Assembly (NCBI RefSeq): GCF_035594765.1 | Contig: NC_085846.1 | Location: 18,029,190-18,093,189 of the forward strand | DNA: 64,000 bases | Direction: 5' to 3' | DNA from: Anolis carolinensis | Lineage: Eukaryota | Shown here: piece by piece, positions 2,913 to 49,800 of the stretch | Layout of the letters: every line of letters starts with the position of its first letter | Numbering within the stretch: position 1 is the first letter of the stretch | The notes under the pieces: generated by a model | Database searches by the model: none | The model's input: only the letters and a program-made list of their open reading frames with translations | What the model was told of the DNA's origin: nothing | Made by a program: the position numbers and the translations under genes

Positions 2913-3620
2913 CAGGGGTCCCCAAACTAAGGCCCGGGGGCCGAATGCGGCCCTCCAAGGTCATTTACCTGGCCCCCGCCCTCAGTTTTATAATATAATA
3001 TTTTTATATAAGTTTTAATAATATAATATATTGTATATACATATAATCTTGATTATAATATTATAATGTTATACAATATAATACTAATAATAATACCATA
3101 TAATAATATTAATTATATGTTATATATTACATATAATATTACAGTATAGTGGTATAGTTCAATATAGTAATACATAATGCTAATATTGTGCTATGTTAAT
3201 AATATAATATATTGTATGTACATACAGCTGATCTGAGTCCCCTTCGGGGTGAGAAGGTTGGGATATAAATGTAGTAAATAAAGGTAGTAAATAAATAAAT
3301 AATTTTAGACTTAGGCTCGCCCAAAGTCTGAAATGACTTGAAGGCACACAACAACAACAACAATCCTAATTAACCTGACTATCTCATTGGCCAGAAGCAG
3401 GCCCACACTTTCCATTGAAATCCTGATAGGTTTATGTTGGTTAAAATTGTTTTCATTTTTAAATATTGTATTGTTCTTTGTTATTGTTGTATTGCACTAT
3501 AAATAAGACATATGCAGTGTGCATAGGAATTCGTATTTTTTTTTCAAATGATAATTTGGCCCCTCAACAATCTGAAGGATTGTGGACCGGCCCTCTGCTT
3601 CAAAAGTTTGGGGACCCCTG
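2913..3620. mobile_element. Non-autonomous hAT transposon with AT-rich interior and captured retroelement tails
   Basis: TIRs CAGGGGTCCCCAAACT/AGTTTGGGGACCCCTG and an exact 8-bp TSD TCTTATAC. Confidence 0.9.
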
Positions 3621-5049: not shown

Positions 5050-5175
5050 CAGTATATTGATCAAGACCATCTAAAGCAGTATATCCTCCCATTCAAATCT
5101 GCAGTGGAAATTGATCCCACTGCCTCCTCAGTCAAGATATTTCCTTCTCAAGAAACCACAGGTTGAACTGCTGCC
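5050..5175 (-). other. Putative exon of the same minus-strand gene; may start an ORF MGGYTALDGLDQYT-G at 5092
   Basis: Branch-point CTAAC and CAATAG acceptor; donor CTG|GTAAGT; ATG-to-donor distance 43 nt (phase 1). Confidence 0.35.
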
Positions 5176-27800: not shown

Positions 27801-30800
27801 ACCATCCTTGTGGGAGGCTTCTCTCATGTCCCCGCATGGGGCTGAAGCTGATAGAGGGAGCTCATCCGCGCTCTCCCCGGGTGGGATTCGAACCTGGCAG
27901 CTTGCAAATCAGCAGCCCAACCTTCAAGTCACAAGGCTTCAACCCACTACTCCACCGGGGGCTCCTACCCAAGTGGTGATGAAGCTGAGTTGTTGCAGTT
28001 CAAAGTCATCCATCAGACCAAATGGATGCAGTTGACAAGATTGCTCTTCCAATTGTCTATATTGATACGATTCCATGTTTTATTTTGTAATGTAGTGTTG
28101 TTGATGTAGTGTTGCTGATTAAGGTCTAGGATTATAAACTGAATAATTAAAATTTACCTCCAGTGAATCGAACCTTCTCCTGGCTGGCGTGCATTCCTAC
28201 ATGGGCTTCAACATTAAATGCTTCTATCTCAGCAAGCGTCCTCAGAACCCGGGATGTGGCCCAGCCAGGCAAAGTCAGGTTGTGAACTTTCTAAGAGAGA
28301 AGTGAGAGAAGAAACAGAACTTGGAAGAAGTTAGTGATCAATGACCAAAAAGATACTTTCCTAAACTGAAGAAAGATATATTGGAAAGTGGAGGTGTAAT
28401 GTGATGCAGTATTCCTACCTGACAGAAAAGGGAGTCGTGTACTCTCCAAAGACCCCGCAGAGTGAGCTGCTCCATTTTAAGTCCTGTGTAATTAGCCATC
28501 TCTCTTATGAAGCCCTGTGCAGGAGTAAAGGGTGAGAACCTAGATTAAGAAAAATAAACTTCAGTTGCTTAGTTTCAGTATCTTATTTGCATATGTTTAT
28601 CAAAAGAGTGATATTTCCATGTAAGTAGGTCAAACTCATAGGTGAAGCTCTTTAGTATAGCGGTGACAATGGTGACCTATCTATGGAATCAATTCCCTCA
28701 GATGTTCTGCCTGGCACTAACACATTTGGCATCTAAATGTCAGTTTACAATGTTATTTGTTTTTCCCGTATATAATAATATAAAAATCTATGTAGCTGGA
28801 GGTTCCATTAAGGTTATTGAAATGTACATACAAAGGCCTCTAGTGTTAATTATTGCTGATTTATTTTGTATCTACTATTGGTACTAATAACTTTCCTCTT
28901 TTAAAATGTGGTTTACCTATTTTAAAAATTATAATTGGGTCATTTGTTTAATGTTTTTTAATTGTAATTGATTAAATGGGAAGAGCAGTGCTAGGAACCT
29001 TCTCCTCCCCCCACTTCTTAATCTTCATACCTTCCAGCCTTCCATTTTAGCCTGATAACTTGGCAAATTAATTGTCTCTTCCATCAAATGTTGGTAGCGT
29101 TGGCAAGTCCGAGTTGGTGATTTCAGCAGCTGTGAGGACCAGTTTAGGGAAAACAGACAAAATCTGATTATAGGAAAAATCCAGTCCCTTGCTTCTCTCA
29201 GAGCTAAAGCATTAGGCAAAGTAGCCATACATTCTCCTTTGCATAGGGCAGTTTTCTATTTAAGGACTCCTCCTTTTCAGAAACGAGGAATGTGCAGCTC
29301 TCTACCATGCTAGCTCTCATCACTCCTTACAGTTGACTAGTTACGTAAGCTTGATAGATGATACAGCCCAAGGATATCAATACAATGGATTCAACTTAAT
29401 GATCCCAGGCAGTTGGCAATCCAGTGTAGGGCATGGGTGGTGGTGGTGGTGGGGGAGAATCCCATTTTACGCAGTCCAAGATTATTGCTTTCCATTATCT
29501 TACCTTATCATATTTAATAGGCACTGTATGGATAGGAACAGGACTCCAGCCAATCTCTGGATCCAAGTTTGAATAGAGTCCCATCAGGTTGGCTTGAGCA
29601 CTCATGAGGGTGCGGTCATAATCTGTGCTGCGAACATATATCTAAAATAGACATACCCATATTATTTATGGCTGCCATTAGGCCTCTTAACTTTGGACAT
29701 CTTCCTTAGGATATTTGCTTGATACCTTGCAGAGCACAAATGTTTTTAGTTTATGAAGCTCTTTATATAGTGTTTTGCTTGAATTTCTTTTTCTTCTTAA
29801 AAAAGAGCTCTCACTGATTCGGAGAACACATTTGGTTCTAATTATTGGAAGTTTTTAATATTTTGATCATCCCGTATTTTAGATTTGCATTACGGTGTTT
29901 ATATTTGTTTGTTGCCCTGGGAATTACTGAGCGCAAGTGATGTGAGTGTAATATATTAATACATAAGTATCAAATATTTACCTCTTGTGGTTTGTAGGCA
30001 GAACTCAAAAATCCATCGTATTTTTGCCTCAGAAACTTTCCAAGAGCCTTTTGTTGCAAAATACCTACCTACAAGGGCCAGAAACAGCAAGAATGAATGC
30101 CTGTTCTTCCTCTGCCTTACACAAACAGACACACAAAATGTGGACTTAAGAACATCCACCTCCTCTCCTCTCACACACACACAAGATCCCACCTTGGTGA
30201 GCTGCTGGAATCCCTCTGGCCAAGCGGCTGCTTTGTGGGGATCCGTTGGGTAGGTGCCAAGGGGGGATCGATCACCATGGCGATACACCTAAGACAGAAG
30301 GGGTTTCAAACTCAAGACAAAGAAAACTTTTCTGATCCACAATAATCCATCAAGGCTCTGTTTAGATGACACCATATTGTGCAATTGCTCAACCTCCGTA
30401 TGGGATCCAGATGACAGCATGCCTCAATTGGCAATCCTTCTGTGTTTTCCCACTGCTTCTTCCAGATTTTTTTCTTTCCATTAATGAAGAAGGAAAAGAC
30501 AGAACAGCCGGACAATATCATTCAAATGTTAATGCCAGAAGTTGTCCATCCTTGGAATCCTTCTCGACTTAAGATCACTTCTTAAACCTTACCTTCCTAA
30601 TGGGATTTATAAACTGTGAGCCTCTCTGAGTATATATGCCTTCAGGTTGCCTGTTGATCTATGGTGGCTTAATGAATTTCATAAAGTTTTCTGGTCACAG
30701 TACAAATTAACTCTTTATGCCACTGAACGGCTGTGAAAGTTTGAACATGACATGATGCCAACAGGCACTCCACCACCCATATGACTGCAATTGCAAAAGA

Positions 30801-31316
30801 CGCAATGCAGAGACAAGGTGAAGTAAATAGAAAACTACTACTTCTGAGTTCCTTAGTGTAGGCTAAAGATGTATAACCAATACAGCATATGTTTATGAGA
30901 GATTTACTTTTGAACACAGTCACATTGTCCCAAAGGATTCTTGCAATATAGTCTAGTCTTTTCTCTCTCAGCTTAACATAAGAAGGATGGGATCTTTTCA
31001 CTATATACAACCCATTGGTTCAGGATGACTATCCTTGGTTTTCATTCTTATCACGAATAATCAAGAAACTTTGGCACAGTTTCCTCTTGTCAATAGATCC
31101 CGATCCTTCCCAAAACCACAAGCAATCTAGTCTCCAAGCCCTCGTACTAAAGACCTAACAAGGCTTGTCTTCTTTTCCCAACAACCCCAAGAATCATCAT
31201 CATTTAATTCTGCCTACCAGTGTCACGAAGCGCAGCGTCCTTTCTTGACCTGTAGTAAAATGCAAAATATTTTGCAGGAAGACCACCAAAGCTGCAAGAG
31301 TTTCAGAGAGTCTCAT
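24859..31316 (-). CDS. ACP4: Acid phosphatase 4 (testicular acid phosphatase, ACPT), histidine phosphatase, 11 exons, 397 aa, type I membrane protein
   Basis: Exons (minus strand) 31316-31218, 30288-30193, 30068-29982, 29641-29504, 29129-29031, 28514-28419, 28290-28158, 27500-27418, 26355-26249, 25197-25028, 24944-24859, all in frame. Signal peptide, catalytic [22 protein letters not shown]|HDST, PPYAAC, LPGC..PCPL, and a C-terminal TM helix ([22 protein letters not shown]). Adjacency to the SNORD88 host gene matches the human ACP4-C19orf48 arrangement. Confidence 0.9.
25331..25793 (+). mobile_element. tRNA-derived SINE with L2-like 3' tail
   Basis: A/B-box-like head; 3' end CCCTGAGTCCCCTTCGGGGTGAGAAGGGCGG...(TAAA)n. 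Confidence 0.7.
26626..26940 (-). mobile_element. Sauria SINE
   Basis: Reverse complement of the 12909 element. Confidence 0.85.
27687..27964 (-). mobile_element. tRNA-derived Anolis-type SINE (same family as 9091)
   Basis: Reverse-complement match to the 9091 copy; B-box GGTTCGAATCC. Confidence 0.8.
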
Positions 31317-34300
31317 GGTGTTGACTTGGTTCTATTACCTTGATGTGTCTCTTTGGGGGACCTAGGGGAAATGTTTTTGTAATATAAATCCCATCCTCAC
31401 ACCTTATCATTATCTTTGATTTCACCTTGCTGACAAGCTAGATTTAGCAGACACCACTACAGCGTGATAGGCCAATGTTAACTATGTAATATGCTTTTCC
31501 CCTTGAAAGAATATGTTTGCACACCGGATTTGGGGGGATATTAGTACCCATGATTACAAGTCCAAAACAAGACATGACGTCTTTTGTGTTCACTCTGTAG
31601 AGAAAAGTTTCAGCATGTAGTAACTGGTTACTCTGTTTTTGGCTGAGTTTTTACAGCTTTAAAAGCTGGCTGGTAGAAATTCTTCAAGGGAAGATTCTCT
31701 AGCGCAACGATGGAGGATCAATGGTGTTATCTGTTAGATGTCTGCCTGTCATGCCAGTCATTAGTGGCACAGGATCTTTTCAAAAGGCTGGAGACATTTC
31801 TTACTTATTCTATTTTTATGACACATTTCTTCCAGATTAAGGTAAAAACAATACAATTCCAAAACACAATTAAAATCATCACAGTAAAATATAATATTAA
31901 AAAACAAGACAGAATACCGTAATTAAAAAGTATACAAAAGTAAAAAAAAAATAAAGTCTCTTCCTCTAAAAAAACAGACTCAAACAGAAAACTCAAGCGA
32001 GGTATATCAATGCCTATGGAAAGTTCAAATTATGGATTTTAGTCAATCCGTTCACAAACTGAATTCTGAAAAAATAACAGTGACCTAGGTGTGTCATCTT
32101 TTTACCTTCCGACAATTTCTAAGTTTCTAAGTAACAGGATGATAGGAAGAGATCCATCAGTGAAGCTCCATTTGATCTTCTAATATTCCTTCTACACTGC
32201 CATATAATCCAGATTATGAAGGCAGATATTCCACATTATCTACTTTGAAATTGATTACATGACACTATTTCAGACTCTGCTTCCTTATAGATAAGTGGTT
32301 CTCAACCTGTGGGTCCCCAGGTGTTTTGTACTACAACACCCACAAATCCCAGCTAGTTTCTGGGACTTGAAGGCCAAAACATATGGGGACCCAAAAGTTG
32401 AGAACCACTGTTGTAGATCAATGGAAAAAGTATGTTCAGGCGTTTGAAATGATCGTGTCAGAGAGAGTGAATGTTCAAGAATGAAATCCACAGTACACTT
32501 GGAAACTTCAACCCAGATCTATCTGAAGCCAGATTGCATGTTGTAGTACTGATGGCCAAAGAGGAGGACAGTTTCCCATTGACTATGTGAACAACAGCAG
32601 GGCTCCATATGAATTATATGTGTAATTTATAGAGTGTGCTTGGGCTTTTACTAGCAATATCCTGGTTATCTTGATGTAATTTATCATTTTGTAAATTTTA
32701 ATGACAGTCAGAGAATGCTGTTCTTTGCTGCTGCTCTGGCAACAGCTTACTTTAGTTGCTATAAATTGAGCTAAAAAGGCAAAAGCAGTTTGTGCAGAAG
32801 TAGCTCAGCAAAGTGGGCAGAGTGCTGCTCTTCCCAGTAGGTTCAGGCAAAAGCAAACTGCTGCAAGCTCTCTGTGTTCTTCATTAATAAGTTTTGCCAC
32901 CTTGGCTACACTTTGATGTTGCTTAGCCATTCCAGGTTTTATCTGTGGAATACTGGAGACTGTGCTCACTCTTCCTGCCAGTAGTACTAATTAGTAAACA
33001 GGTTAAGCCTTGCTCCAGGAACACAGCTTCGGACTTTACCCCCGATTGTTTTTGGAGAATGCAGCAGGTCAGCCAACTTGGACTCAGAGCCTGATCTTCC
33101 TGGTATACAGCTGCCGAGAATATGCTGCCGCCAAGAGTAAACACTAAGAAAACCTAATTCTTTTCCATTTGATAAATGCTTTCTTTGTTGCCCTCTCCAG
33201 TTTATGAAGCTCCTGCAGTGATCTGGAAGGCCAGATCTACTCAGATTCTACTCAATACATTACAGCAAAACTAAGTCATCAAGAATACAAAGTATAACTT
33301 TGTCACTTGCAAATAGATGGAAACAGGATGGAGTAACAAAAAGTGAACTAATGTGCTTGAATGTGCCTTTGGCTGAACTCTGACACAGCCTCAGACACTG
33401 GTAGTTCTCTGGGTGAAATTCTCTTCCAGCTCCAGATGGTCCTACCTGGTTTTCAGACAAGGTGCTGATTTCTGCTTTCTGAAGTCAAGGGGGAAAAGGT
33501 TAACAGGCAGCATTATTAGCCATAACAGGTCTTGACCTTGTGTAAGCTGCAGTGAAGCCACAGGTTTGAGAAGGATTTGTGCATGAAATCAAATTTGTGT
33601 GCATTGTGTTGTCGAACCACTATGACCCCCCTCCAATAATACACTATATAGTTTGCCAATGGTTCCTAATAAATATATTAATTTTTATTTTTAAAATGCT
33701 TTGTCAAACTTTTGCTATTTTGAAGCATCGGAGATCGAGAATAGACCAGCGGCAGCTTTAACACACACACCCTCCCCGCCACTAGACTTTATTGTTCTAA
33801 TCCTTTAATAAATTGTATCTGTTTTCCTTGACTTTCTATGTATCTTTTCGTGTACTATACCTAGCTCTATTATATAAAATGTATAAACTCCTTGATAAAA
33901 TGTAACAAGATATAGCCCAGAGGCAGTTACTCCCCATAACCCTGCTGACATATTTCCGTGAGAACGAGAAGGTTGGGCAAATACCTCTGGCTGTTTCCCA
34001 GACAGACAATCATCAAAAATCTGTTGTTCATGTATGCAGAGATGGATAATTTTCCCATGCCAGCCCAGATAAACTCAGGATTATTGGTCTGGTCAATGAT
34101 TCACTTGAGGCTGAGAGTCTGCTGACCATGGAAAGAGAAGCACAGAGTATGTACATTAGTTAAGCCTCTTTATTAACAGCACTACCCATGATTGCCCAGA
34201 ATAATCATTTTTTCGCCTTTGTCTGTGGACTCTCCTATCTTTGCCGAACTCAGAACTAGACGGTTGAGCTAATCAAGAGCTCATTATCATTTTTTAGCAT

Positions 34301-35138
34301 TGTCTTTGCAAATGACATCTCCTCCCAGGGGACATCCCAACAGCTGATTGGCTCACTGGCAAATCAATCCCAAACTGTAATTTCCCTGCAAAAGGAAATG
34401 CCTGCCTGAAGGCAGTGACTTCAGCAGCACTTACAATCAGGGCGCAGATCCAGAGCAATTCCTCTGTCAGCCAATTAAGGAAGGGAGTGGGAGTTTTAAA
34501 TAGCTGTCAAGCTGTATAAGATGTTTTGGTTTCTGCATATGTTTTGTGCGTGTACACTTTGAAGCATCTAATTGTACTTACATCCCTTTTGGTCAAATTG
34601 AATAAACCTCTGTGGCTTGTTTTCCACCTGGTGTTTCTCTGTCCTGGTCCATTCAGTTTAGCTTGAACTCGCCGGGCATGGATCCTCTTATCCGTGGTTC
34701 TAGTTATCCATTTTATCCAATTCAATTTGAACTATCAGAAAACAAAGTCTCAACCTGTCTCAACCTCCTATGTAGACAATTCTGAAGCCCTTTGGATTTC
34801 TGGATAAGGGATAGTCTAAATATATAGGCCTCCTCGAGAGTCCTGGTATCTCTCACCTCTAACTGATGTCATGTTTCAATATATTATTAAGAAGTTGATC
34901 CCAGGTGCCCTACTGTTTGTATGCCTGGAGTTCAAAGGGCTAATGGTGCAAATGTTTGCACACAAGAATGTGCCTGCAACTGGCAGGAAAGCAAGGTTGC
35001 TGTTTCCTGCCCTACTAGATGCCCTTCCCTGGTCAGTGCCCTCCTGTTTACTAGGCCTTTGTCCTTTTACAACCACCATTCTCATTCGGACACAGGACAG
35101 ACCCAAAGCCTTGACAAGCAAGGATTTTGAGACCTATC

Positions 35139-38100
35139 ATGAAGCTGTTTAGCATCTTCATTGGCACCCTCTTTTTCATCGGAGCAGCAGGTCAGTATAT
35201 AGTCCCCAAATCTACTTACTGGTTTATTTGTGGGGGGAGTTGAGAGGGCCACATGAGCCAGCAGTTTGAGGATTGGATTATGATTAGGGACCAGGATTTG
35301 AATCCCCACTTGGCATGTAATTTTGGGCAAATCACATTCTCTTAACTCCATCTGAACAAAAAAAAAACTCCTTAAGACTGACATAAGTTGGAAATAACTT
35401 GAACGCACACAAGAACAAAGCAAATCCTGATGACTCTTCCTTCTCTCTCTTTGAGTGTTTCTACCTGCAAACGCCATGATTCTGCTGTTTTTGCTGAAGT
35501 GCTATGTGATAGCTGACAGCGGCAATATTTTGCTTCAGAATGTGTGCAGTTTTCCCCTTTGGAGGTTTGACTGGATGGCCATCTGTAAGGAGTGCTTTGG
35601 TTGTGTATCCCTGCATGACAGAATGGGATTGGACTGGATGGCCCATGTAATCTCTTCTGACTCTATGATTCTTTGGGTGAAGAGCGATTCTCATATAAAA
35701 TTTGTGGTGCAGAAAGTTTGTCCCTGCTTTAATCTATTGCATGTTAGAAGTGAAATAAGCATATTAAATTTCTCAAGATTGTATCTTGAACAGATTACTC
35801 ATTTTAAGCCAAACCACAAACCTGAAATTGCTATTTGTATTATATAGGTAGAAAATATGGATGAAATACACAGTTTACAGACATAGAATAGGACAAATAT
35901 GAGTTGATCAGTATCAATACTTTTTATTTTCTTTTATACATATAGCAGCATAACCTCTCTCCCTGACTCCCCACCATTATTGTATTTTCTTACTCAGAAT
36001 ACATGAAGACACACATATAGTACTTTATACTTTTGAACTGTCCTGATTTGGCAGGGACCATCAGATTAATGCTCTGCTATTCTATTTTTTTTCTATCTGC
36101 CTTTTAAAACACCCTACTTTCTTTTCCTCCTCTCTTTTCCCCTTCATCCTGCAAATCAAGTTCAAAGTTTTTTAACTGTGCCAGAAGCAACTTGAGAACA
36201 TACTGCAAGTCACTTCTAGTGTGAGAGAATTGGCTGTCTACAGAGATATTGCCCAGGGGATGCCCAGATGTGTTGCCATCCTGCTGGGCGGCTTCTCTCA
36301 TGTCCCCGCAAGGTAGAGCTTGCAGATTTGAACCGGCAACCTTCAGGACAGCAAACCAACTTTCAGGACAGCAAACCAACCTTCAGGTCAGCAATTCAGC
36401 CGGCATAACAATTTAACCCATTGAGCCACTGTGGCTCAAGTTCAAAGTGAAATGCACTTAACTTGCTCAGCACAAGGAGAGACAGAATTTTAACCTTTTC
36501 AGTGAATTCAGATGCAAATAAATTGCCTTTCCTACGTTGTGTATTTTTCCCTAAATTAATAACTGTTTAATGTTTATCTCTTCCCCTGCCCCTTGATAGT
36601 CTTGATATCATTTTATCCTAATTTCTTCTTTTACAGGATCTGCTGATGACATCTTTGATCTCTCTGATGCCTTAACTCCTGTTGATCCTCCTCAGATTAA
36701 CCCAGAAAAAGATCGTAAGTCAGGGTTGGGGATAAGACAGAGAGTTAGGGAATACTGAATGTTGTTATTACCTGAGTGAGAAATGGTAGGGAGAAAAATA
36801 TTATTGTGACTCAAAAACTAAATTGGTGAACCTTTAAAATTGGATCCGTTCAATGTGCTGGTTTAAATGGAAATTCACCCAGTTACAATCCTGGACTAGT
36901 CATTACAGAACTGTTGCAAGTATAAAACCAGGACAGAAAACCACAAATGCTACCTTGAGTTACAGTACTTAGAAAGAAGGTGGAATATGTATGTCATAAA
37001 TGTACTAATCAATAAGTAGCCATATATTTATAGTCCTAGCAGTTTCTGTAAGTGGGATATGTTTTGGTTATGTTGTGCAGGATATTGTAAACAAATTTCT
37101 TTTAAACGTAGAGTATTCATAGGTCAAATGAATGAAGTCAAACTGGGGTGCATTTACTGGGTAGAATTAATTCAGTTGGACACCACTTGAACTGCCACGA
37201 CTCAATGCTATGGAATCACTGGAGTTGTAGTTTGGTGAGGCACCAGCACTCTTTAGCAGAGAAGGCTAAAGACCTTGTACAACTAAATCTCCCATGATCC
37301 CATAGCGTTTAATCATTACAGTTAAAGTGGTGCCAAACTGCTTTAATTCAACAGTGCAGATGCACCCCCCCCCCCCAGTTGTCCTTTTCATTCAGGCATA
37401 CTCTGGGTAATGGACTGACATCGATGAAAGTACTTTGCTGCTGCCCTTTTTTACAAATGTATTGTAGGTCATGTTTAATTCAACTGTGCAGTAATATTGT
37501 AATGTGTTTAATTTCATTTAAGTATTATAACCCCTTGTATTTCTACATGTGCTTGTTTTTAATCTTTTTTTGTGAGCTGCCTTGGAACAAAGGCAAGATG
37601 TAAATCAAGTAAATGAAATTATTTAAGACTGAAGCTTGAGCAAGAAGTTGTGGTTACAGCTCAGCAGCTTGCCTCAGGCAAGTCATTCCAACGGTATTCC
37701 CGTATGGAGGGCTCCAGACCCTTATATGTTACAAGGCAACTATAACTGTGAATTTTACTCCTTAACAGTTTGTACCCAATACAAAATACAAAAGAAGTTG
37801 TGGGAATGGAAGGAAGAATTGTGAGTGGAAGATAATCTGGTGTGAGTGTGGCTGAAATGCCCTAAAGGCACTATAGCCTATTTGATCTTGTAAAGTAAGA
37901 AGGATTGGTTCTAGTTAGTACACTGGGCACATTTGCTTGGGTTAGGGCAGGCATGGGCAAACTTCGGCCCTCCAGGTGTTTTGGACTTCAACACCCACCA
38001 TTCCTAACAGCCGAAAGGCTGTTAGGAATGGTGGGAGTTGAAGTTCAAAACACCTGGAGGGCTGAAGTTTGCCCATGCCTAGGTTAGAGACACAATACTA

Positions 38101-41100
38101 CCCCAAGATGGAAAAAAAAATCCAGTGTTTAACCTGCAAGAACACTTCACTATGGGTGCATCTACTTCTACACTGTAGAAGTAAAGCATTTGACCTCACT
38201 TTAAGTGCCTTGGCTCAATACTATGAAATCCTGGGAGTTGTAGTTTTGAAACTTCCTTAGTCTTTTCTGCCAAAGGGTACTTGTGTCTCATCCCACTACA
38301 AATAACCTTAAAGAGTTAATATTAAGCTTACAACCAAGTGACAAGTCTGTGAAGTGCTTTGAACACGAGAAAGTGCTATATAATTTGCAAAGGATTTTGA
38401 AAAAATGTGTAAAAATAGATATTTCCAGTCTATGTCACACTCACATCCTATGCTTACATGTTGGTAACTCAGGGTTGATGCTAAGAAAAAGTAATAAAGA
38501 TAGTTATGTTTAGAAACCGAAACAAAGTTTCTCAGAAAGGTTATAACAATTCCATTCCCAGAAGTGTTCCTATTTAGTATTTTACTTTATTAACCAATTT
38601 CTTACAAAATCAGAAATTTTCCAACAGCGGGGTTCAAAAACAGGAACAGGAGTCGAAGAGTTTAAGAAATAAGTGGAAAAATTGCACTAAGTCTAGTATG
38701 TTGTTTTTTTCCAGGTTAGGCCAGAGTATTGTGCATGTTCTTAGAGACAGATATTTCCTTGTTTACATTATGTAACAAAATTTGAAAGATTTACTGTTCT
38801 TGGTTTGGAAGTGTTATTTTCTGTTTCATTGTATGGTGCTTCCTTTGAAAGTACTGTAGTTGTCATACTCCAGAAACTTCATTTTTGTGGCTGCCACAAA
38901 CTAGGTTGAATTGGTTGAGACTTTATGAGATACAGTAGTCTCACTTATCCAAACTTCACTTATCCAAGGTTCTGTATTATCCAAGGCAGTCTGCCTTTTA
39001 GTAGTCATTGTTTTTGTAGTAAATGTTGCAATATTTTGGTGCTAAATTTGTAAATACAGTAATTACTACATAGCATTACTGCGTATTGAACTACTTTTTC
39101 TGTCAAATTTGTTGTATAGCATGATGTTTTGGTGCTTAATTTGTAAAATCATAACCTAATTTGATGTTTAATAGGCTTTTCCTTAATCCCTCCTTATTAT
39201 CCAATATATTCGCTTATCCAACATTCTGCCGGCCCGTTTATGTTGGATAAGTGAGACTCTACTGCAGGGGTCCTCAACCCTTCAGACTGTGGAGGGGCCA
39301 AATTATCATTTGAAAAAAAAAAACCAAAAAAACGAACAAATACCTATGCACACTGCACATGTCTTATTTGTAGTGCAAAACAACAACAACAATGAAAGAA
39401 CAATACAATATTTAAAAATGAAAACAATTGTAACCAACATAAACCTATCAGGATTTCAATGGGAAGTGTGCTGAGCCACAAAATCCAAAGGGTGACCTTG
39501 GGCATGTCACACTATCTCAGCCTCAGGAGAAAGCAATGGCAAGCATCTTCAAAACAAATCTTGCCAAGAGAACCCTACAACGTGCAAGAACTGTGTTGAG
39601 AAAACCTCGTACTGAAGATTGGCTCATACTGAACCCTAACAAGCTTAAGACTCTTAGCAACAGAAGGGAATGGTTTTTCTTTGGAATAGATGACTCCACT
39701 TTGCTTCTTTCTTACCCACGCAGAGTGTCCCAATGAAGCTCGTGACATTGTCTTCCTGCTTGATGGCTCAACCAGCGTCCGTCCCTCAGATTTCATTGAA
39801 ATGAAAGCTTTTATTGCTCTCATGATGAAAAGATTCCCTGAGAATACACATGTGAGTAAGGAATGATTCACAACAGAGAGTGGGGTTGGGTGGGATATGA
39901 ATTTTCATAGTCTCTAAACAGAGCTGTCCCGATGCATCTTGCTGGTTCAGGTGAAGACAAAAATGGCTTCTTGCCTGCTTTTTCCATTCCATGTGTAGCG
40001 GTTAAAATTGAATATCTTTTCTCATGACTGTTGTGCAAGAAAGGCTGAGGTGTGATGTCACCTCTCCAGGCTGGTTTCTAAGACCTTGAAGCAAGTTATT
40101 ATTATTATTATCTGCATCAGTTAATGCAGTTTCAAACCATTTCAACTGCCATGGCTCACCGTTTGGGGATATTTGGATTTGTAGTTTCATGAGCCACCAG
40201 TAGTCTTTGACCAAGAAGACTAAAGACCTTGCAAAACTACAAATCTCATGATTCTATAGCATTGGGCCATAAATTGGTGCCAAACTGCGTTTATTCTCTA
40301 CTGTAGATGCACTCACAGTCCCACTTTATAATACCTAGACTTCTTGGTGATAAGATGGTATATTCATTAACATTTTAAAATATGGCTTCTTATATAAGAT
40401 GCCAGCTGCAACTCCTGAGTTTCCATAGCATTAAGTTGTGACAATTAAATTGGTATCAAGTCTACAGTGTGGAGGCACCCGAAGTTGGAAATTGATGGGA
40501 AACACCAGAAAGGCCAGTGTCCTGTTATTCAGTTTGATGTTGACCAGTTCATGTGGCAGGGTTGGTGGTAATCTTGATGGAGACAAAGGAACCATATATT
40601 AATGCACGAATATGTGATAACCAGATCTAAAATATGATGGATATACAGTACTATAATCCAAAAATGATGTAAGGGAACAACAACTAATGTCATCTATGAA
40701 ATGGATGCCTTAGTTGCAGACGATATCCAGAAGCATTTTCTCTTCCAGCATAGCACTGTTGCTTAAACAAAGAAGGAAATATGAATGTTCATAGAAGTGC
40801 CAAGGCACAGTTTCCCCAATTAATCTTTCTGGGTCTTCTTCAGTTCGCTCTCCTACAGTTCTCCAGCCACTTTCAAGAACATTTTGACTTTAGACATTTC
40901 CAGAGAAATCGCGATCCTGACCATCTGATGAGAGAAGTGAATCAGCTGAGAGGCTCCTCATACACAGCCACTGGGATCAGGAAAGCCACGTGGGTATCTT
41001 GCTACCATTCCTCTTTTTATATAGTGGCATTGGTAGTGGGATGAGGAGGGTGCAGGTTGTACCAGGTGATAGTATGATGGAGTGAAACCAATTATGGTGT

Positions 41101-44011
41101 TTGGGAAAGAAGTGGGCAAAATAGGAAAGCAAGCAGCTGGGCTTGCTCCCTTGGAAGGCTGGTGGGGAAAGTCCTGTTCTTCTCCTCTTTCTGGATTTCT
41201 TTACAAGGATTCAACTCTACTCCCTCCTTTGTGTGTCCTGAAGTCCTTCCCCTTCTTTACCACCCATTTACATATTTTCTTGCTTCACACCTTGTCCTTC
41301 GTCAGTCCCCTCTTTTCTTTAAACAACAGATATTTTAAAGAAACTTCCTCTCATATACTGACTGAACTGAAGTTTGGTAGTCTCCTATATTATAGCCACT
41401 CTACCACTGTTGCTGTTTCCTTGCAGCTAATCCTCCTTTTCTCTTCTCTCTACTGCTTAAAAGGGAGCTATTCACCACACAGAAAGGTGCCCGAGCTACA
41501 GCCAAGAGGTTCCTTGTGGTGGTGACGGATGGGGAGAAATTTGGGGACATGTTGGAGTATGCAGAGGTTATAGAGGAAGCCAACAGAGCTAAAATTACAC
41601 GCTTTGCCATTGGGGTAAGGAGCAACGTACTTACCTATGTTTATTTATTTAATTACCTACACATTTTTGTCCTGCGTAGTTGGAATAAATGTCACATCAG
41701 GACGTAAAACTAAGCACTGGGCTGCTTGTTTGAAATCCATCTTTTCCTTTAACGCTTACGGCTTTCACCTCCAAACATGTTGCTTTTCTTCTGGCAGGTT
41801 GGCATAGTTTTCACAAGCAGAGTTGCCCAGAGGGAGCTCCACAGCATTGGCTCTCATCCTGTTCCAGATCACGTCTTTGTTGTGAGGCACTTCACCGGCC
41901 TCCGGGACATCCAGACCCAGCTGAAAGAGAAGATTTGTGCCAATCACGGTACCAGAATTTAGGAGCTGGGGAAGGCAGCAAAGCAGCAGAAAATTTAAGA
42001 ACTTGGGAAAGGGTCAGCCAACTAGTTGCCCAAACCCTGTCTGAATAAAGAAGGGTTTGCCTGTTGACAAAAGAGTAAAGGAGGTTAGCACTGGGGGGCT
42101 TCTACATGGTAGAATTAATGTGGCATGACACCACCTTAACTACCATGGCTCAATGTTATGGAATTTTGGAGTAGTAGTTTGGTGAGACACCAGCACCATT
42201 TGTAAGAGACAATTCCCACAATTCCATAGAATTAAGCCATAGCAATTAAAGTGATGTCAAACTGCACTAATTCTACAGTGTAGATGCACCCTTGATCTCT
42301 TGTCAAAGTGGTTTCATAGCCTGAGTATAATCCACCAGCAAAGTTTTTTATAGGGCTCTCATGAAACATGCTTCTGAGGATGGTAGGGCTAAGGTTTTAT
42401 CTACACTGCCATACAAAATCCACATTATCTGCTTTGAACTGGATTATATGAGTCTACACTGCCATATAATCCAGTTCAAAGCAGATAATCTGGATTTTAT
42501 GTGGCAGCGTAGAAGGGGCCTAAGAGAAAGACTTCTCTTGGAGAGCTGAAAATTCAGGCTGGATCTACCCTGCCCTTTATCTCAGGATTGGATCCTGGAT
42601 TATCTGGCAGTGTAGACTCATATAATTCAGTTCAAAGAAGATAATCTGGCATCAGATCCTGGGAAAAAGAGCAGCATAGATCCAGCCTCAGAGAGGGTTA
42701 ATATGGGAGTAAATAAGCCTTTCAAAAAGTCTGCATGGAAGCAGTAAACCTTGTAAATCATTGCCAGCAACTTGAATTGTGCTAAGACTAGTACCTGGTG
42801 AAAATGTCAGTGCACAAGGTTTCTGTCCTTCCCTGCCTCACTCAGCAGTCTTTCTGAAATATGTATTAGGCATCTTCCCCAAATCAGGATTGTAATGGCT
42901 GTAATTCATAATTTCCTCTGTTCAAGACACAATTGCCTGGCACTTATGAAATGGTGGCAGCTTTATGTGGGTGAATTGTAGAATGACACCACATAGTTCA
43001 GTACTATGCTTTGCAAGGCTTTTTCTGCAGCGTTCTTTGCCAGAAAACACAGATGACTCACCAAATTACAAATCCCAGGATTTCATTGCATTGAATCCTG
43101 GTAATTAAGGTGATGTCAAACTGCATTCATTCTACAGTGTAAAGCAGGCATGGGCAAACTTAGGCCCTCCCGGTGTTTTGGACTTCAACTCCCACAATTC
43201 CTAACAGCCTCAGGCCCCCTCCTTTCCCAGCTGCGGGGGGAAGGGGGGGAGGGAGGAAGGGGCCTGGGGCTGTTAGGAATTGTGGGAGTTGAAGTCCAAA
43301 ACACCAGGAGGGCCTAAGTTTGCCCATGTCTGGTGTAAAGGCACCCTCAGTCTTCAGTAGTCACATCCACATAGGTAATTATCACTAGGGCTTTAAGGCA
43401 GACTTGGGGTGGCATCTTCCAGAAAATGGGGGGTCTAAAACAATAAATTTTCTAGACTCTGTTAGAGGTTAGGGAACAGGATAGCCAAGTCTAAAATCTG
43501 AAAGAATGTCATATTGAGGAAGGGGCAAGTTTGTTTTCTGCTGCTGTGGAGCTTATGACCCCATTTATACTGTCCATTTAATGCAGTTTCAAACCAGTGT
43601 TGGAAGGTTTTGCTGTGGAGATAATTACACAGGAGATCCTGGAACTAGTTTGAGACCCGGATGGCGATTACACAAACCACAGAGCACTGATGCATATTAA
43701 GGACTTCCTTTTGCACATTTTTGTGGGAGTCTATTGTCCGGCCGCTGTAGTTTGAAGTTAGCTTTGAGTTGCATAAAATGGACAGTGCAGATGGGGCTGG
43801 TAGCAACAAAATAATAACTTCTGTTCTGTGTCTTTCAGGCGTCAGGGTGCCACACACAACAAGAGCACCGTCAGCCTCACCGGGCACCTGCCCCAAGCCT
43901 GATGCTCAGGTGCTGCACAAACTGGAGCAAGTGCTGCATAGCCTGGATCAAGTCAAAACCAAGCTGGATTTCCTGGAGGCTAAACAAGGGAAATGTGGAC
44001 AAAGGCCCTAG
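35139..44011 (+). CDS. Predicted secreted integrin alphaM/X-like I-domain (vWA) protein with N-terminal CD99-like exon and C-terminal coiled coil, 7 exons, 292 aa
   Basis: Exons 35139-35190, 36637-36714, 39724-39851, 40844-40989, 41464-41614, 41798-41948, 43839-44011. All are GT-AG and phase-compatible; total 879 nt including stop. Protein: MKLFSIFIGTLFFIGAAG-SADDIFDLSDALTPVDPPQINPEKD-QCPNEARDIVFLLDGSTSVRPSDFIEMKAFIALMMKRFPENTH-FALLQFSSHFQEHFDFRHFQRNRDPDHLMREVNQLRGSSYTATGIRKAT-ELFTTQKGARATAKRFLVVVTDGEKFGDMLEYAEVIEEANRAKITRFAIG-VGIVFTSRVAQRELHSIGSHPVPDHVFVVRHFTGLRDIQTQLKEKICANHG-VRVPHTTRAPSASPGTCPKPDAQVLHKLEQVLHSLDQVKTKLDFLEAKQGKCGQRP*. The I-domain motifs (DGSxS, TATGIRK, TDGEKFGD, DHVF, QLxEKI) match ITGAM/ITGAX as I recall them. 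AATAAA at 44392 and 44420. Confidence 0.85.
36172..36436 (-). mobile_element. Anolis-type SINE, degenerate
   Basis: Homologous to the copies at 9091 and 27687. Confidence 0.7.
38933..39264. mobile_element. Tc1/Mariner-type MITE
   Basis: TIRs CAGTAG(AG)TCTCACTTATCCAA / TTGGATAAGTGAGACTCTACTG, preceded by TA. Confidence 0.75.
43145..43332. mobile_element. Short hAT MITE (palindromic)
   Basis: TIR CAGGCATGGGCAAACTT; TSD GTGTAAAG. Confidence 0.85.
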
Positions 44012-44644
44012 CATGTGTCCAATGCAGATAGAGTGATCTACAGCAGGAGGCAAGCGGTGGAGGGGGAAATGTGAGAATCTCAAAGAAAGGAGATGAGAAG
44101 TGGTAAGATAGAGGGTGCATCCACATTGTAGAATGAATACAGTTTGACACCACTTTAACTGCTATGCATTAATGCTATGGAATCTTGGAAGCTGAATTTT
44201 TGGTAAGGCACCAGCATTCTTTGACGGAGAAGGCTAAAACCTTGGAAAACTACAAACCCCAGAATTTCATAGCATTAAGCCATGGCAGTTAAAGTGGTGT
44301 CAACACTATAGATGCACCCTTTCCCCCATTTTGTATGCCAACACTATTTGACAGTTGGGTGGTTTATACATTCAGTTTTAACGTGGCCTCTAATAAAAAT
44401 GCTGAACGATTTCGAAACCAATAAAGCCACCTGTTTTCTGGTTTTGCTTCTGCTTTATTTTAACTAGCAACAATCGATTCCACATCTGTGCCCTGTAAGC
44501 TGTTTTGAGCTTTACTTGCTTGAAAACTCAGAATCACAGTCTACCTACACTGTAGAATTAATATAGTTTGATACCTCATTTCCACAAGAAGTGGAAAAGG
44601 GGAGAAATCACCAAAGAAAAATTCAAGTGAATAACCAACTCCTG

Positions 44645-45982
44645 TAGGGAAAAATTTTGCAAGGCTAAAGCGCACAATGAGCTCAGGTTTGCCAGGGAAA
44701 TTAAAAACAATAAAAAGGGTTTCTTTGCTTACATCGGTAGAAAAGGGAAGAACAACGATAAGGCCTCTGTGAGGAGAAATGGGGTGATGGTGGCAGGGGA
44801 TAGGAAAAAGGCAGAACTACTTGATGCCTCCTTTGCCTCAGTCTTCTCACAAAAAGAAAGTCGTCTTTAACAGCAACATGAAGTGGACAAAGGATTAGGG
44901 GAAATCCAACCCCAGATAGGGAAACAAGTCATCCAGGAATACTTGGCTGCTCTAAACGAATTCAAGTCCCTGGAGCCAGATCAACTACATCCAGGAGTAT
45001 TGAAGCAACTAGCAGAAGTCATTTCAGAACCACTGGCAATCATCTTTGAGAGTCCCAGCAGACTGGAGGAGGGCGAATGTGGTCCCTATCTTCAAGAAGG
45101 GGAAAAAGGATGAACCAAAACAATTACCATCCGGTCAGCCTCACGTTGATACCAGGTAAGATTCTGGAAAAGATCCTTAAGGAAGTGGTCTGCAAACATT
45201 TAGAAACAATTGCAGTCATCGCTAATAGTCAACACAGATTTATCAAAAACAAGCCATGCCAGACTAATCTGATCTCTTTTTTCGATAGAGTTACAAGATG
45301 GGTAGACACAGGGAACGCCGCGGATGCAGCATATCCAGATTTCAGTAAGGCCTTTGACAAGGTCCCCCATGTTGTTCTTGTTGTTTATTCATTCAGTCAC
45401 TTCCAACTCTTCGTGACCTCATGGGCCAGTCTACGCCAGAGCTCCCTGTCCGCCGCCACCTCCAGCTCCTTCAAGGTCAAGACACTCACTTCAAGGATAC
45501 CATCCATCCATCTGGCCCTTGGTCGGCCCCTCTTCCCTTTTCCTTCCATTTCCCCCAGTATCAGTATCTTCTCCAAGCTTTCCTGTCTTCTCATGATGTG
45601 GCCAAAGTACTTCATCTTTGCCTCTAATATCCTTCCCGCCACTGAGCAGCCAGGCATTATTTCCTGGAGTGTGGACTGGTTTGATCTTCCTTCGGTCCAA
45701 GGCACTCTCAGAATTTTCCTCCAGCACCACAGTTCAAAAGCATCTATCTTCCTTTGCTCAGCCTTCCTTATGGTCCAGCTCTCGCATCCATAGGTTACTA
45801 TGGGGAATACCATACTCTTAACAAACTAGTCAAATGTGAGCTAGGCAAAACTATGGTTAGGTGGATCTGTAACTGGCTAAGTGAACGAGCCCAAAGAGTG
45901 CTCACCAATGCATCTTCTTCATCCTGGAAATAAATGAGGAGTGGAGTGCCATCAGCAGGGTGCTGTCCTGGGCCCAGTTCTG
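44645..45982 (+). mobile_element. CR1 LINE ORF2 (RT) fragment interrupted by an antisense RTE insertion
   Basis: NYHPVSLTLIPGKILEKI..SQH.F..KPCQTNLISFFD..DFSKAFDKVPH; CR1 sequence resumes after about 45813. Confidence 0.85.
45371..45812 (-). mobile_element. RTE-BovB LINE 3' end
   Basis: ORF 45397-45813 VFPIVTYGCESWTIRKAE.RKIDAFELWCWR...GRPRARWMDGI, with a (CAA)-type tail. Confidence 0.9.
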
Positions 45983-46304
45983 AAGCTGTTAGGAATTGTG
46001 GGAGTTGAAGTCCAAAACACCTGGAGGGCTGAAGTTTGCCCATGCCTGATCTACACTATATAATTAATGCAGTTTGATACCACTTCAACTGCCGGGGCTC
46101 AATGCTTTGGAATCCTTGGGAGTTGTAGTTTTGCAAAGTCTTTCACCTTATCTGCCAAAAGGCGCTGGTGTCTCACCAAACTGCATCCTCCATGATTCCA
46201 TATTATTGAGCCCTGGTAGTTCAAGTGGTCTCAAACTGCGTTAATTCTACTGTGTGGGTGCAACCCCAGAAACATTTTAAATACTAAATAATAAAGGCGA
46301 GAGT

Positions 46305-46810
46305 ATCTCTGCGCATGGACTGATGTTGAGAAATCAAAAACCCCCACTCTCGGAATTACCGTCTCTGCAAAGGCCCTTCCCTTCGGCTATCTTCGGAATC
46401 TCTCGGGAATCTTCGGGTCTGCGGCCGAAAACGAACCGAACGCCCTTCGGGCGTTTCCGCCCGTGTAGGGGCGCGACCACCTTTTCATTTCGGTCATTCT
46501 CGGCAATCTCATATTCTTCGGCTTCGCTCGGTCATTCCCGTCCGTCGACGGGAGCTTTCGGCTATTCCCGTTTTCAGCTCGGCTATTTCCGGTTCCGTTC
46601 GGGCAATTCCGGCTCCGCTCGGCCTCCGGGAAGAGTCGTAGCAGAGATAGGAACAGAAGCCTCGGCGGGATGGAAGGTACGCGAGGGAAAGCCCCCTCCC
46701 CTCTCGTCTCCTCTCCACGGAGAGGTGGGCGGGAAGAAGCCGGGAAGCCACGCCCTCTCGGACTCTGATGGGGGCTTCTAGGGCAGCTGCCTTGCTGACG
46801 TCACCCCAGC
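46305..46810 (+). promoter_or_regulatory. CpG-island promoter and 5' UTR of RABEP2
   Basis: Dense CpG (many TTCGG/CTCGG), ETS-like TTCCGG and CRE TGACGTCA at 46796, around exon 1. Confidence 0.7.
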
Positions 46811-49800
46811 TGGGGAGCGGTCAGAGGTCACAGTTAGGGTTAGGGTGTTGGAGTTGGGTGGGTAACTAGGGGTGCATCTATGAATGCAGTTGGACATTAC
46901 TTTAGCAGTGCTGTTGCATCATGGGAGTTGTAGTTTGGGGAGGCAACAACTCTGGCAAAAGGTGGCTAAATAACTTGTAAAACTACAAGTCCCATGATGC
47001 TATCAGTTAAAGAGACATCAAACTGCAGTTTATAGAGTTAAAAGGTTTAAGAGCCGGGAAGTCATAGGGTTGAAAGTCTTTAGATTTGGGTTGGGGATGA
47101 GGGATTCATAGGGTTAAAAATATTTTGGTTTATAGCAGTACTTCTCAACCTATGGGTCTCCAGATGCTTTGGCTTCAACTCCCAGAAATCCTAACAGATG
47201 GTAAACTGGCTGGGATTTTTGGGAGTTGTAGGCCAAAACACCTGGGGACCCACAGGTTGAGAACCACTGGTAGGGTTAAACGTCTTTAGTTGTAGGTTGG
47301 GTTAAAAGTCTTTTGGTTTATAGAATTAAATGTCTTTAGGTTTGGGTTGGGGATGAGAGATGTATAGGATTAAAAGTATTTTGGTTTGGATTAAATGTTT
47401 TTAGGTTTGGGTTGGGATGAGGGATTTATAGGTTAAAGTCTTTTGGTGTATAGGGTTAAACATCTCTAGGTTTGGGTTGGGGATCAGGGATTTATAGGGT
47501 TAAAAGTCTTGGTGCATAGGGTTAAATGTCTAGGTTTGGGGTTAGGCATGAGAGATTTAGAGGATTAAAAGTCTAGGTTTAGGGTTTGGGACAAGGGATT
47601 TATAGGTTAAAAGTCTTTTGGTGTATAGGGTTAAACGTCTTAAGGTTTGGGTTGAGGATCAGGGATTTATAGGGTTAAAAGACTTGGTGCATAGGGTTAA
47701 ACGTCTAAGTTTGGGGTTAAGAATGAGGGATTTATAGGGTTAAAAGTAGATTTAGGGGTTGGGTCTAGGGATTTATAGGTTCAAAGTCTGAGTATAGGGC
47801 TAAACATCTTTAGGTTTGGGTTGGGGATCAGGGATTTATAGGGTTAAAACTCTTTAGGTTTGGGAGTCGGGGATTTATGCTATAAGGTTGAAAGTCTTTA
47901 GATTTAGGGGTTGGGGATGAGATATTTATGGGGTCAAAAGTTTTGAGGTTTAGGATTTGGAACTAGGGATTTATAGGTTAAAGTCTTTTGGTTTATAGAG
48001 TTTAACATCTTTAGGTTTGGGTTGGGGATTAGGAAGTTATAATGTTTAAAATCTTATAGGGTTAAAGTCTTTAAGTATATAAGAATTAAGTCTTTATGTT
48101 TGGGTTGGGGTGAGGGATTTATAGGGTTAAAAGTCTAGGTTTAGGGATTGGGTCTAGAGATTTATAGGTTAAAAGTCTTTTGGTTTGTAGGGTTAAACGT
48201 CTTTAGGTTTGGGTTGGAGATGAGGAATAAATGTTTTCATGCTTAATGTTTTATTGTTATGCTATTGGTTCATATAGTTTTTTAATTATTTAATTTATGA
48301 ATATTTTAATATGTTTACATGGATGTGAGGCATTGAATCTTTGCCATGTATAATGCTGTACATCACTTTGAGTCCCCCTAGGGGTGAGAAAAGCAGTCTA
48401 TAAATGAATTAAATAAATAACAAATAAATAGGTTTGGGTTGGGGATGAGGGATTTATAGGGTTAAAGTTTTTAGGTTTAGGGATTGTGATACATGCAAAT
48501 GGAAACATGAATGGTCCTGGGTTCGGATCTTGCTTCATTCAGATTCCTTGGGGCTTAATCTTGGGGATCGGAAGTTTGCAGGGTTAAAACACTAACAGTC
48601 GGAAGGCAAGGTTGAGTAGGTCTTGAGTTTGAATCTAGATCTATTCAGATTTCTTGTCTTTTCCCACCCCTTTCCCAGACCCTGAAAAGGTGCTGGATGT
48701 GGGTGCCCAACTGCCCTCAAACGCAGACCCCGAAGACACCATCCAAAGCCTGCAGGCACAGCTGGCGGCTGCTTTGACGGAGGTAGAGACGGTTCGGACC
48801 GTGGCCACTGTGAGCGAAGGCACCAAGCAGGAAGCAGTGGAGGCTGTCCGTCGCCAATGGCAAGAGGAAGTGGCCTCTCTTCAAGCCATCTTGAAAGGTA
48901 CAGCCACCTTGACTCTCAAGGGAATGCATCTGCACTGTTGAATTAATCCACTTTGACCTCGCTTTAACTGCCACAACTCAGTGCTGTGATACCATATCAT
49001 GGGAGTTGTAGCTTGACAAGGCTCTTCTCTGCCAAAGAGTACTCTTGTCTCACTAAACCACAAATCCTAAGAATCCATAGCATTGAGCAGCTAAAGTGGT
49101 GTTGAACTGCATTTATTCTACAGTGTAGATCAGGCACCTTCAAACTGCAGCCCTCCAGCTGTTTGGGCCTCCAATTCCCATAATTCCTGACCATTCAACA
49201 AGCTGGATAAGACTTCTGGGAGTTGGGGGCCCAAACAACTGGAGTTTGAGGGTGCCTGGTGTAGATTTGTCCAGGTGGAAACAATGGTTAAACTGTCTCA
49301 AATTGAGGGTTAGAACCAGGATTCTGGTCTCCTGTATAGTACATTCTCAGGTAACTGGAACTCTCAAGCAACCAGCAAAAATGGAAGAAATAATACTTTA
49401 AATAAAAAATTACAATAAAATCAGTTTTTAATACAGTAAATCTGTGTTATATTAAATTAAGATTAATGCCTTAATTTGTTTTTAGTATTTCAATATTAAT
49501 ATCAAGTCAATATAGTGTGATATGGTATATTTTGCGGTATAATATTAGACTTATTTTAAATAGTAACTTAAGCAATCACAAACTACTAAGCATCTAGGTT
49601 GCTGTGAGTTTTCCGGGCTGTATGGTCATGTTCCAGAAGCATTCTCTCCTGATGTTTTGCCCCTGTCTATGTCAGCCATCCTCAAAGGTTGCCTGCCATA
49701 GATGTGGGCAAAACATCAGGAGAGAATGCTTCTGGAACATGGCCATACAGCCCGGAAAACTCACAGCAGCCCAGTGATTCTGGCCATGGAAGCCTTCGAC

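Follow-up and report, generated by a model that had tools for sequence, protein, structure and literature searches.

A stand-alone I domain of integrin type with its own leader and a predicted coiled-coil tail in Anolis carolinensis and other squamates

What becomes of an integrin I domain when it is encoded without the rest of the integrin? This question is raised by a gene lying between ACP4 and RABEP2 in a 64-kb stretch of Anolis carolinensis contig NC_085846.1 (the whole stretch is hereafter called the window). Integrin I domains are textbook modules that work inside a large membrane heterodimer, where they are allosterically controlled by the beta subunit. The gene described here is a real, spliced, strongly expressed single-copy gene of A. 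carolinensis with orthologues throughout squamates, and its product is a VWA/I-domain protein of unprecedented integrin-derived architecture, in which a signal peptide, a short acidic motif and one I domain are followed by a predicted coiled-coil tail. The gene model itself is not new, as it is already present in RefSeq and UniProt for many squamates, where it is misleadingly named. An earlier note on this DNA had predicted that annotation pipelines would label the product 'integrin alpha-M-like', and the database names agree: the automatic names of the orthologues are of the form 'integrin alpha-M/X/D(-like)', with plain 'integrin alpha-M' in A. carolinensis and in the current Pogona and Zootoca records. 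A literature search returned no description of a stand-alone secreted I-domain protein, and the matches to 'integrin alpha-M/X/D-like' all concerned fish, lungfish, turtle or cat. Since itgam/cd11b serves as a phagocyte marker in a lizard regeneration study (PMC10415409), itgam/CD11b marker studies in lizards need to know which gene is being measured.

Gene model and transcripts

The open reading frame (ORF) comprises 292 codons plus TAG over 879 nucleotides, spread over seven exons at 35139-44011 of the forward strand, with AG/GT at all internal exon boundaries, exon entry phases of 0,1,1,0,2,0,1 and no N anywhere in the window. Every coordinate of the seven-exon, uninterrupted frame proposed earlier was reproduced, as was the AATAAA that follows it. 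The window product is identical to RefSeq XP_003225286.2 (P0121, 'integrin alpha-M', Anolis carolinensis, 292 residues), which matches all seven exon peptides in order together with the split-codon residues G18, Q44, T135 and G236. For similarity searches, the window exons were used one by one, while whole-protein work relied on the Anolis sagrei orthologue (P0094) and on P0121.

Each exon, all on the forward strand, contributes a recognizable part of the protein. Exon 1 (35139-35190) carries the ATG, the signal peptide MKLFSIFIGTLFFIGAA and the first base of a Gly codon, and closes with a GT donor at a phase-1 end. Exon 2 (36637-36714), of 78 nucleotides and phase 1 at both ends, encodes the acidic motif DDIFDLSDAL and then a variable Pro-rich linker. 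The I domain begins in exon 3 (39724-39851) with the N-terminal Cys (CPN), strand beta1, the D-G-S-T-S of the metal-ion-dependent adhesion site (MIDAS) and helix alpha1; exon 4 (40844-40989) supplies the middle of the domain with a GSSYTAT loop, whose Ser aligns to the alphaM MIDAS residue Thr209. Exon 5 (41464-41614) runs from VVVTDGEKFGD, which holds the equivalents of alphaM MIDAS Asp242 and of Lys245, through RFAIG, and exon 6 (41798-41948) provides the C-terminal third of the domain with helix alpha7, ending in KICANH at a phase-1 end. Exon 7 (43839-44011) encodes a Pro/Ser/Thr linker, a Cys, the 3.5-heptad coiled coil VLHKLEQVLHSLDQVKTKLDFLEAK and a second Cys before the TAG. The 3' untranslated region (44012-44440) is partly a SINE-like (short interspersed nuclear element) repeat and contains AATAAA at 44392, the first after the stop, and at 44420.

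Transcription was examined with contigs from four public runs of four studies, placed on 39000-44900. In run X1, exon bins had depths of 800-3800 against 19-41 in unique intron bins, making the exons about 100 times deeper. Spliced contigs join 39851>40844, 40989>41464, 41614>41798 and 41948>43839, each across a GT..AG interval, and the last joint is present in X1, X9 and X13, the latter two of which also carry some of the others. A loose end in X1 before 39724 corresponds to the last 30 nucleotides of exon 2, so that 36714>39724 is confirmed as well. Five of the six junctions are thus supported by reads, among them the decisive 41948>43839; this joint and 36714>39724 are two that the earlier note had singled out for an RNA check. 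The remaining junction, 35190>36637, rests on RefSeq P0121, on the aligned N-termini of the orthologues and on exon 1 of Sceloporus, which is 82% identical to that of the window, and not on reads. The terminal-exon contig in X1 spans 43838 to at least 44297 at a depth of about 2470, and the 44319-44515 bin had none. X9 and X13, which come from other studies, hold spliced and intronic contigs of similar depth; they are consistent with the gene model but give weaker evidence. Splicing of exon 6 to distant integrin exons, which had been named beforehand as a sign against the model, was not seen: exon 6 joins the stop-bearing exon 7 in an expressed gene.

Run X1 also holds six sense-strand A>G differences in intron 6 (42117, 42118, 42142, 42244, 42250 and 42665). 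They fall inside SINE-like and inverted repeats, and the set is missing from the other runs. Such changes are what ADAR editing of pre-mRNA would produce, which further marks X1 as RNA.

The other parts of an integrin alpha subunit were sought throughout the window. Propeller, thigh or calf similarity was found nowhere in the 64 kb: integrin fragments with propeller blades before or after the I domain, taken from turtles, mammals, one bird and one fish, matched only the four I-domain exons in tblastn searches, and turtle propeller/thigh DNA gave no tblastx match to the window. No FG-GAP propeller flanks the I domain, as Pfam searches of the orthologues return VWA only and the transcript passes directly from exon 2 to 3 and from exon 6 to 7. 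Thigh, calf, transmembrane helix and GFFKR are likewise missing from the product, whose ORF stops in exon 7 after the coiled coil. These results agree with the earlier claim that no such exons lie between ACP4 and RABEP2, and together with the loss of the internal-ligand Glu (see below) they show that the protein is not an integrin alpha subunit.

An I domain of alphaM/alphaX type between a leader and a tail

Exons 3-6 all matched Pfam VWA, exon 3 corresponding to VWA positions 1-32 (E 2e-7) and aligning to alphaM C128-K168. In single-exon searches of PDB, the best match of exon 5 was alphaM (E 2e-12), while exon 6 matched alphaX (1e-8) and alphaM (9e-8). The A. sagrei orthologue covers PF00092 at full length (profile positions 1-174 of 174, E 4e-38), and its whole-domain PDB ranking placed human alphaM first with 184 bits (E 2.5e-53), ahead of alphaX (167), alphaL (103), alphaE (87) and alpha1 (62). 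An AlphaFold2 model built on 22 orthologues reached a predicted local distance difference test (pLDDT) score of 80-93 across the I domain. Foldseek matched this model to the alphaM and alphaX I domains with a template modelling score of 0.94 at 48-49% identity. The assignment to the Mac-1/p150,95 type put forward in the earlier note is thus upheld, alphaM and alphaX standing far above alphaL, alphaE and alpha1 in the ranking and Foldseek agreeing.

The residues of this domain divide into those that are kept and those that are replaced. MIDAS Asp140, Ser142, Ser144 and Asp242 (alphaM numbering) are intact in 20 of the 22 orthologues, the Thr209 position holds Ser or Thr, and the equivalents of Lys245 and Ile316 are invariant. 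The Glu320 position, in contrast, is His, Arg or Gln in all 22 and acidic in none (His in the window), the Phe317 position is Cys in all 22, and the Ile319 position is Ser, Asn or Arg in the alignment. In alphaMbeta2, Lys315-Thr322 form an 'internal ligand' in which Glu320 coordinates the beta I metal while Phe317 and Ile319 pack (PMC13155356). With these three residues replaced and the MIDAS kept, the beta-coupling device has been dismantled and the external ligand site retained.

Cys45, which aligns to alphaM Cys128, and Cys232, at the Phe317 position, are both invariant, with no cysteine upstream of Cys45. Phe317 contacts Pro129 in the open alphaM structure (PMC13155356). This contact, together with the lack of an upstream Cys, makes Cys45-Cys232 the likely pairing, and judging from the alignment such a disulfide likely staples the N-terminus to helix alpha7. 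An N- to C-terminal Cys pair round the domain is the pattern of VWF-A and matrilin domains.

Compared with the I domains of alphaM (CD11b) and alphaX (CD11c), the squamate protein thus shares the MIDAS (D-x-S-x-S, Ser/Thr and Asp), Lys245, Ile316 and the four-exon structure. It differs in being apparently secreted, with a leader of its own and a tail predicted to oligomerise, and in lacking everything from the propeller to the cytoplasmic parts as well as Glu320. Recombinant alphaM and alphaL I domains, used in the laboratory without CD18 or the other integrin parts, fold and still bind ligand with metal (e.g., PDB 1ido, 1jlm and 4m76). Those are engineered fragments, however, whereas the squamate gene encodes an evolved, retained fragment equipped with secretion and multimerisation parts.

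The tail encoded by exon 7 is conserved in 20 species, and its Cys-coil-Cys segment is the most conserved part of the protein, its mean column entropy being 0.81, compared with 0.88 in the I domain and 1.6-1.9 in the linkers. Residues 258-285 form a helix in the AlphaFold2 model of the orthologue. When three copies of the window tail were modelled together, the interaction prediction score from aligned errors (ipSAE) was 0.45 in three runs, against 0.02 for the best control, with contacts agreeing to at least 86% between runs and a partner pLDDT of 67 or more. In the calibration of this tool, 21 of 30 solved homo-pairs reached the mark, as against 0 of 23 single chains. The contacts are in register (28-28, 31-31, 35-35, 38-38, 42-42 and 45-45), which points to a parallel coiled coil. 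The terminal multimerisation tail that had been proposed is therefore matched by a predicted helix and by predicted self-association in a controlled run, which supports, without showing, that the tail self-associates. The core of the coil has Leu in the a positions and Val in the d positions, with one Cys at each end of the coil. In GCN4 variants, a Leu(a)/Val(d) core favoured trimers, so that a trimer is our first guess, with a dimer or tetramer also possible; one Cys at each coil end would pair most simply in an even-numbered oligomer. As for relatives of the tail, its profile gave nothing significant against PDB (best E 0.033, to a designed peptide), ESM Atlas features returned only scores of about 0.76 to viral hypothetical proteins, Pfam gave no match, and neither the window nor the RABEP2 part of P0064, a Protobothrops protein model, contained a paralogous segment.

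In its general layout, the protein resembles the matrilins, which are also secreted VWA proteins with a short C-terminal coiled coil, adjacent Cys and Cys-bracketed VWA. The two differ in that the squamate protein has one VWA, no EGF, no match to Pfam Matrilin_ccoil and a VWA of CD11-type origin. Membership in the matrilin family was rejected, as Pfam searches at E up to 10 returned VWA families only, with neither EGF nor Matrilin_ccoil. The likeness is, on sequence grounds, convergent, which is how the earlier note had described it: the Cys-flanked coils are analogous and the VWA domains of different descent.

The opposite end of the protein carries a classical signal peptide, whose residues 1-17 are identical to P0121. 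It holds the one Kyte-Doolittle window of at least 1.6 in the whole product, and no second hydrophobic or membrane-spanning stretch was found by this measure. The new leader proposed in the earlier note, a signal peptide followed by a short acidic exon, was thus recovered, with DDIFDLSDAL conserved. Across squamate orthologues, the motif positions F, D, L, D and A are nearly invariant, while the linker that follows is variable. The human CD99 N-terminal peptide DGGFDLSDALPDN, at the start of mature CD99, contains FDLSDAL (PMC13604740). Exon 2 and human CD99 hence share these seven residues, each directly after the signal peptide. The likeness to CD99/XG, a D-x-x-FDL-x-DAL motif right after the signal peptide, is a match at motif level only, and the squamate protein differs in having no transmembrane region and no match to Pfam CD99L2. 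Exon 2 itself has no Pfam match, a region search with residues 1-46 of P0094 returned the query only, and an Atlas search with residues 1-46 of P0121 gave no usable match. Conservation of FDLSDAL suggests a second binding function at this end of the molecule.

Squamate distribution and origin of the cassette

Orthologues were sought by using as seed a rattlesnake orthologue found via exon 6 and then the family profile, the searches covering annotated proteins of 160-509 residues. Proteins of 282-308 residues with the same architecture were found in more than 25 squamate species. These include geckos (Paroedura, Sphaerodactylus, Eublepharis and Heteronotia), skinks, cordylids, lacertids, an amphisbaenian, anguimorphs including Varanus, iguanians (Anolis, Sceloporus, Pogona, Phrynocephalus and Phrynosoma) and many snakes; the same seven exons are present in Sceloporus. 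Outside squamates, no protein of the same architecture was found among annotated proteins in this size range, and every match was a fragment of a genuine integrin that lacked the tail and had propeller sequence preceding or following its I domain.

All I domains of the family fall into a single clade (support 100/100, stem 0.58), within which the branching mirrors squamate phylogeny (Gekkota, Scincoidea, Lacertoidea and Toxicofera), which fits a single-copy gene inherited vertically. The earlier note had asked whether the VWA domain groups with beta2-integrin alpha chains or with matrilins and collagens. The PDB ranking and the introns described below answer for the CD11 type. Selection was estimated from Nei-Gojobori counts made exon by exon and then summed. 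Between the window and Sceloporus, nonsynonymous divergence (dN) was 0.117 and synonymous divergence (dS) 0.457, for a dN/dS of 0.255; with Thamnophis, the corresponding values were 0.276, 1.128 and 0.245, with dS near saturation and a spurious match for exon 1. Neither frameshifts nor a dN/dS near 1, the signs of decay looked for among orthologues, were seen: ORFs are intact and dN/dS is about 0.25.

The exons of the I domain retain a record of where they came from. In the CD11-type integrin of the turtle Platysternon (P0096, locus L003), in which adjacent exons were joined to place the introns, five introns bound or split the I domain at the positions and in the phases of the window gene. 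The first (phase 1) lies inside the codon before 'CP' in the turtle and at EKD/Q·CPN in the window, the slash marking the intron. It is followed by STDTQ/FALMQ and ENTH/FALLQ (turtle and window, phase 0), IQKV/V·RELF and IRKA/T·ELF (phase 2), RYAIG/VGEAF and RFAIG/VGIVF (phase 0), and IFAIE/G·TQ and ICANH/G·VR (phase 1). The I-domain exons therefore have the CD11-type intron positions and phases that had been claimed for them, and the exon phases likewise confirm that the cassette is phase 1 at both ends. Because all five introns are kept in position and phase, the cassette must have been copied as genomic DNA, and a retrocopy origin was rejected on the same ground. Its symmetric phase-1 ends mean that it could sit between new phase-1 exons. 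We propose that a copy of the I domain was inserted between ACP4 and RABEP2, where it acquired new exons on its 5' and 3' sides; from the range of species, this insertion most likely predates the crown-squamate radiation. The locus offers a clear and datable example of a new gene born by exon shuffling, in which an I domain was cut at exon boundaries, stripped of its beta-coupling residues and kept under purifying selection in the squamate lineages sampled, from geckos to snakes.

Two proteins encountered in the searches deserve mention in their own right. P0010 of Sardina pilchardus, a 'cartilage matrix protein-like' protein of 496 residues, is secreted, with a pair of VWA domains in tandem and an end resembling fibronectin type II. 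Against the squamate profile these VWA domains score 179 and 162 bits, like integrin I domains, and in the tree they fall among those of CD11 type; here I-domain exons may have been captured by a secreted protein in a separate event. In the unnamed 456-residue product P0092 of the turtle Natator depressus, one whole integrin I domain and half of another, nearly identical one stand in tandem; either the I-domain exons of a true integrin gene have been duplicated locally, or the assembly or annotation is at fault.

Possible functions and the surrounding locus

We consider it fairly probable that the gene encodes a secreted, CD18-independent, oligomeric I-domain protein that has a humoral role in innate defence or haemostasis, as a binder, bridge or competitor. 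The protein would leave the cell by way of its signal peptide, and its tail would assemble a parallel, disulfide-stabilised oligomer, while the Cys45-Cys232 pair would hold the N-terminus against helix alpha7. The I domains clustered in this way could bind ligands bearing acidic residues via Mg2+, with avidity and independently of CD18, and this avidity would make up for an affinity that, in an isolated I domain retaining Ile316, is expected to be modest. By analogy with alphaM, candidate ligands could include iC3b/C3d, fibrinogen and ICAM-like molecules. The protein could accordingly be an unrecognised humoral immune or haemostatic factor in reptiles, and it offers a natural test of what a lone I domain does.

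Several observations weigh against this reading. The AlphaFold2 model resembles closed, low-affinity I domains, with a root-mean-square deviation of about 1.0 Å to 1jlm against 2.6 Å to 1ido, and Ile316, which favours the closed state, is retained. In two species with intact ORFs, the MIDAS region has changed: Hemicordylus capensis (P0066) carries the equivalents of D140H, D242A and E244Q, and Crotalus adamanteus (P0018) that of D242G, although Vipera and other snakes keep the Asp. Metal-dependent binding may hence not be universal in the family. The Cys45-Cys232 disulfide is putative, and the three-copy run of the tail lies outside the calibration of the tool, coiled coils being easy for such models. 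The tree, in which squamate integrin I domains are represented by partial sequences, does not single out one CD11-type gene as donor or sister.

A more specific form of the favoured reading, which we hold only tentatively and think rather doubtful, is a humoral arm of the complement receptors. A circulating oligomeric 'soluble CR3 head' would bind targets coated with iC3b/C3d or fibrin(ogen), and the CD99-like motif would dock a second partner on leukocytes or endothelium, giving a bridging opsonin or regulator unparalleled in other vertebrates. An unlikely alternative is a matrilin-like matrix adaptor, that is, an oligomeric VWA protein that cross-links collagens or other matrix and to whose present role its integrin ancestry is irrelevant. 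The combination of VWA and a C-terminal, Cys-flanked coiled coil does parallel the matrilins, the Cys pair round the VWA follows the matrix/VWF-A pattern, and expression is very high in one sample set, as in abundant matrix or secretory proteins. However, the domain shares about 48% of its residues with alphaM and is much nearer to the CD11 I domains than to that of the collagen-binding alpha1, and the EGF domain and Matrilin_ccoil match are absent; the conserved MIDAS and ligand-face Lys245 of alphaM fit either role and so lend no specific support to matrix binding.

Less likely again is a soluble decoy or competitor, which would occupy CD11/CD18 ligands and so damp leukocyte adhesion, or soak up toxins or adhesins that target the CD11b I domain. 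An I domain of the same type as alphaM/alphaX would suit this role, as would the loss of beta2 coupling, which makes the protein signalling-inert, and the predicted multivalency, which would make it an effective competitor. Selection can be read in two ways here, since a moderate dN/dS of 0.25 is usual for secreted proteins with immune roles but, as a whole-gene value, gives no sign of an arms race, although it cannot exclude one; the present data fit a decoy as well as an opsonin or bridge. Effectively excluded is that the gene is a transcribed remnant without function, or a short isoform of an integrin alpha gene that is larger or in decay. Such an explanation could call on the database names, integrin alpha-M(-like), on predicted isoforms with odd first exons in Podarcis and on a model fused to RABEP2 in Protobothrops. 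It is contradicted by the lack of propeller, thigh or calf exons in the 64 kb and the position of the gene between ACP4 and RABEP2, by the splicing of exon 6 to a terminal exon carrying the stop, by an ORF intact in more than 25 species with dN/dS of about 0.25 and seven exons shared with Sceloporus, and by a leader, motif and tail as conserved as the I domain.

The neighbours of the gene are conserved as well. Upstream on the opposite strand, and head to head with it, lies the 5' part of an ACP4-like histidine acid phosphatase gene (28200-32100, -), which is collinear in tblastx with positions 1-5600 of locus L001. Downstream is RABEP2 (Rabaptin/Rab5-bind; 46500-60096, +), where the RABEP2 part of P0064 matches 52833-60096 and the 5' exons extend from about 46.5 kb by tblastx. 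The order and orientation ACP4-like (His_Phos_2), I-domain gene and RABEP2 are the same in Sceloporus undulatus and Thamnophis elegans. The Protobothrops model P0064 fuses the I-domain gene to RABEP2, and the predicted Podarcis raffonei isoforms P0079, P0085 and P0080 have alternative first exons and no signal peptide. Both are probably annotation artefacts, alternative promoters being also possible.

An Rfam scan of 34000-46000 found no RNA families, and two repeats in the introns of the gene stand out. In intron 6, 43140-43337 is an inverted repeat of 84 nucleotides, 93% complementary with a 30-nucleotide spacer, that looks like a miniature inverted-repeat transposable element (MITE) or hairpin element; reads of all runs pile up there with many alternative joints, indicating a high-copy family. 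In intron 2, the interspersed repeat at 39031-39470 has no Rfam match and has enormous contig depth in all four runs, up to about 880,000; it probably belongs to a transposon or SINE family that is transcribed and highly abundant.

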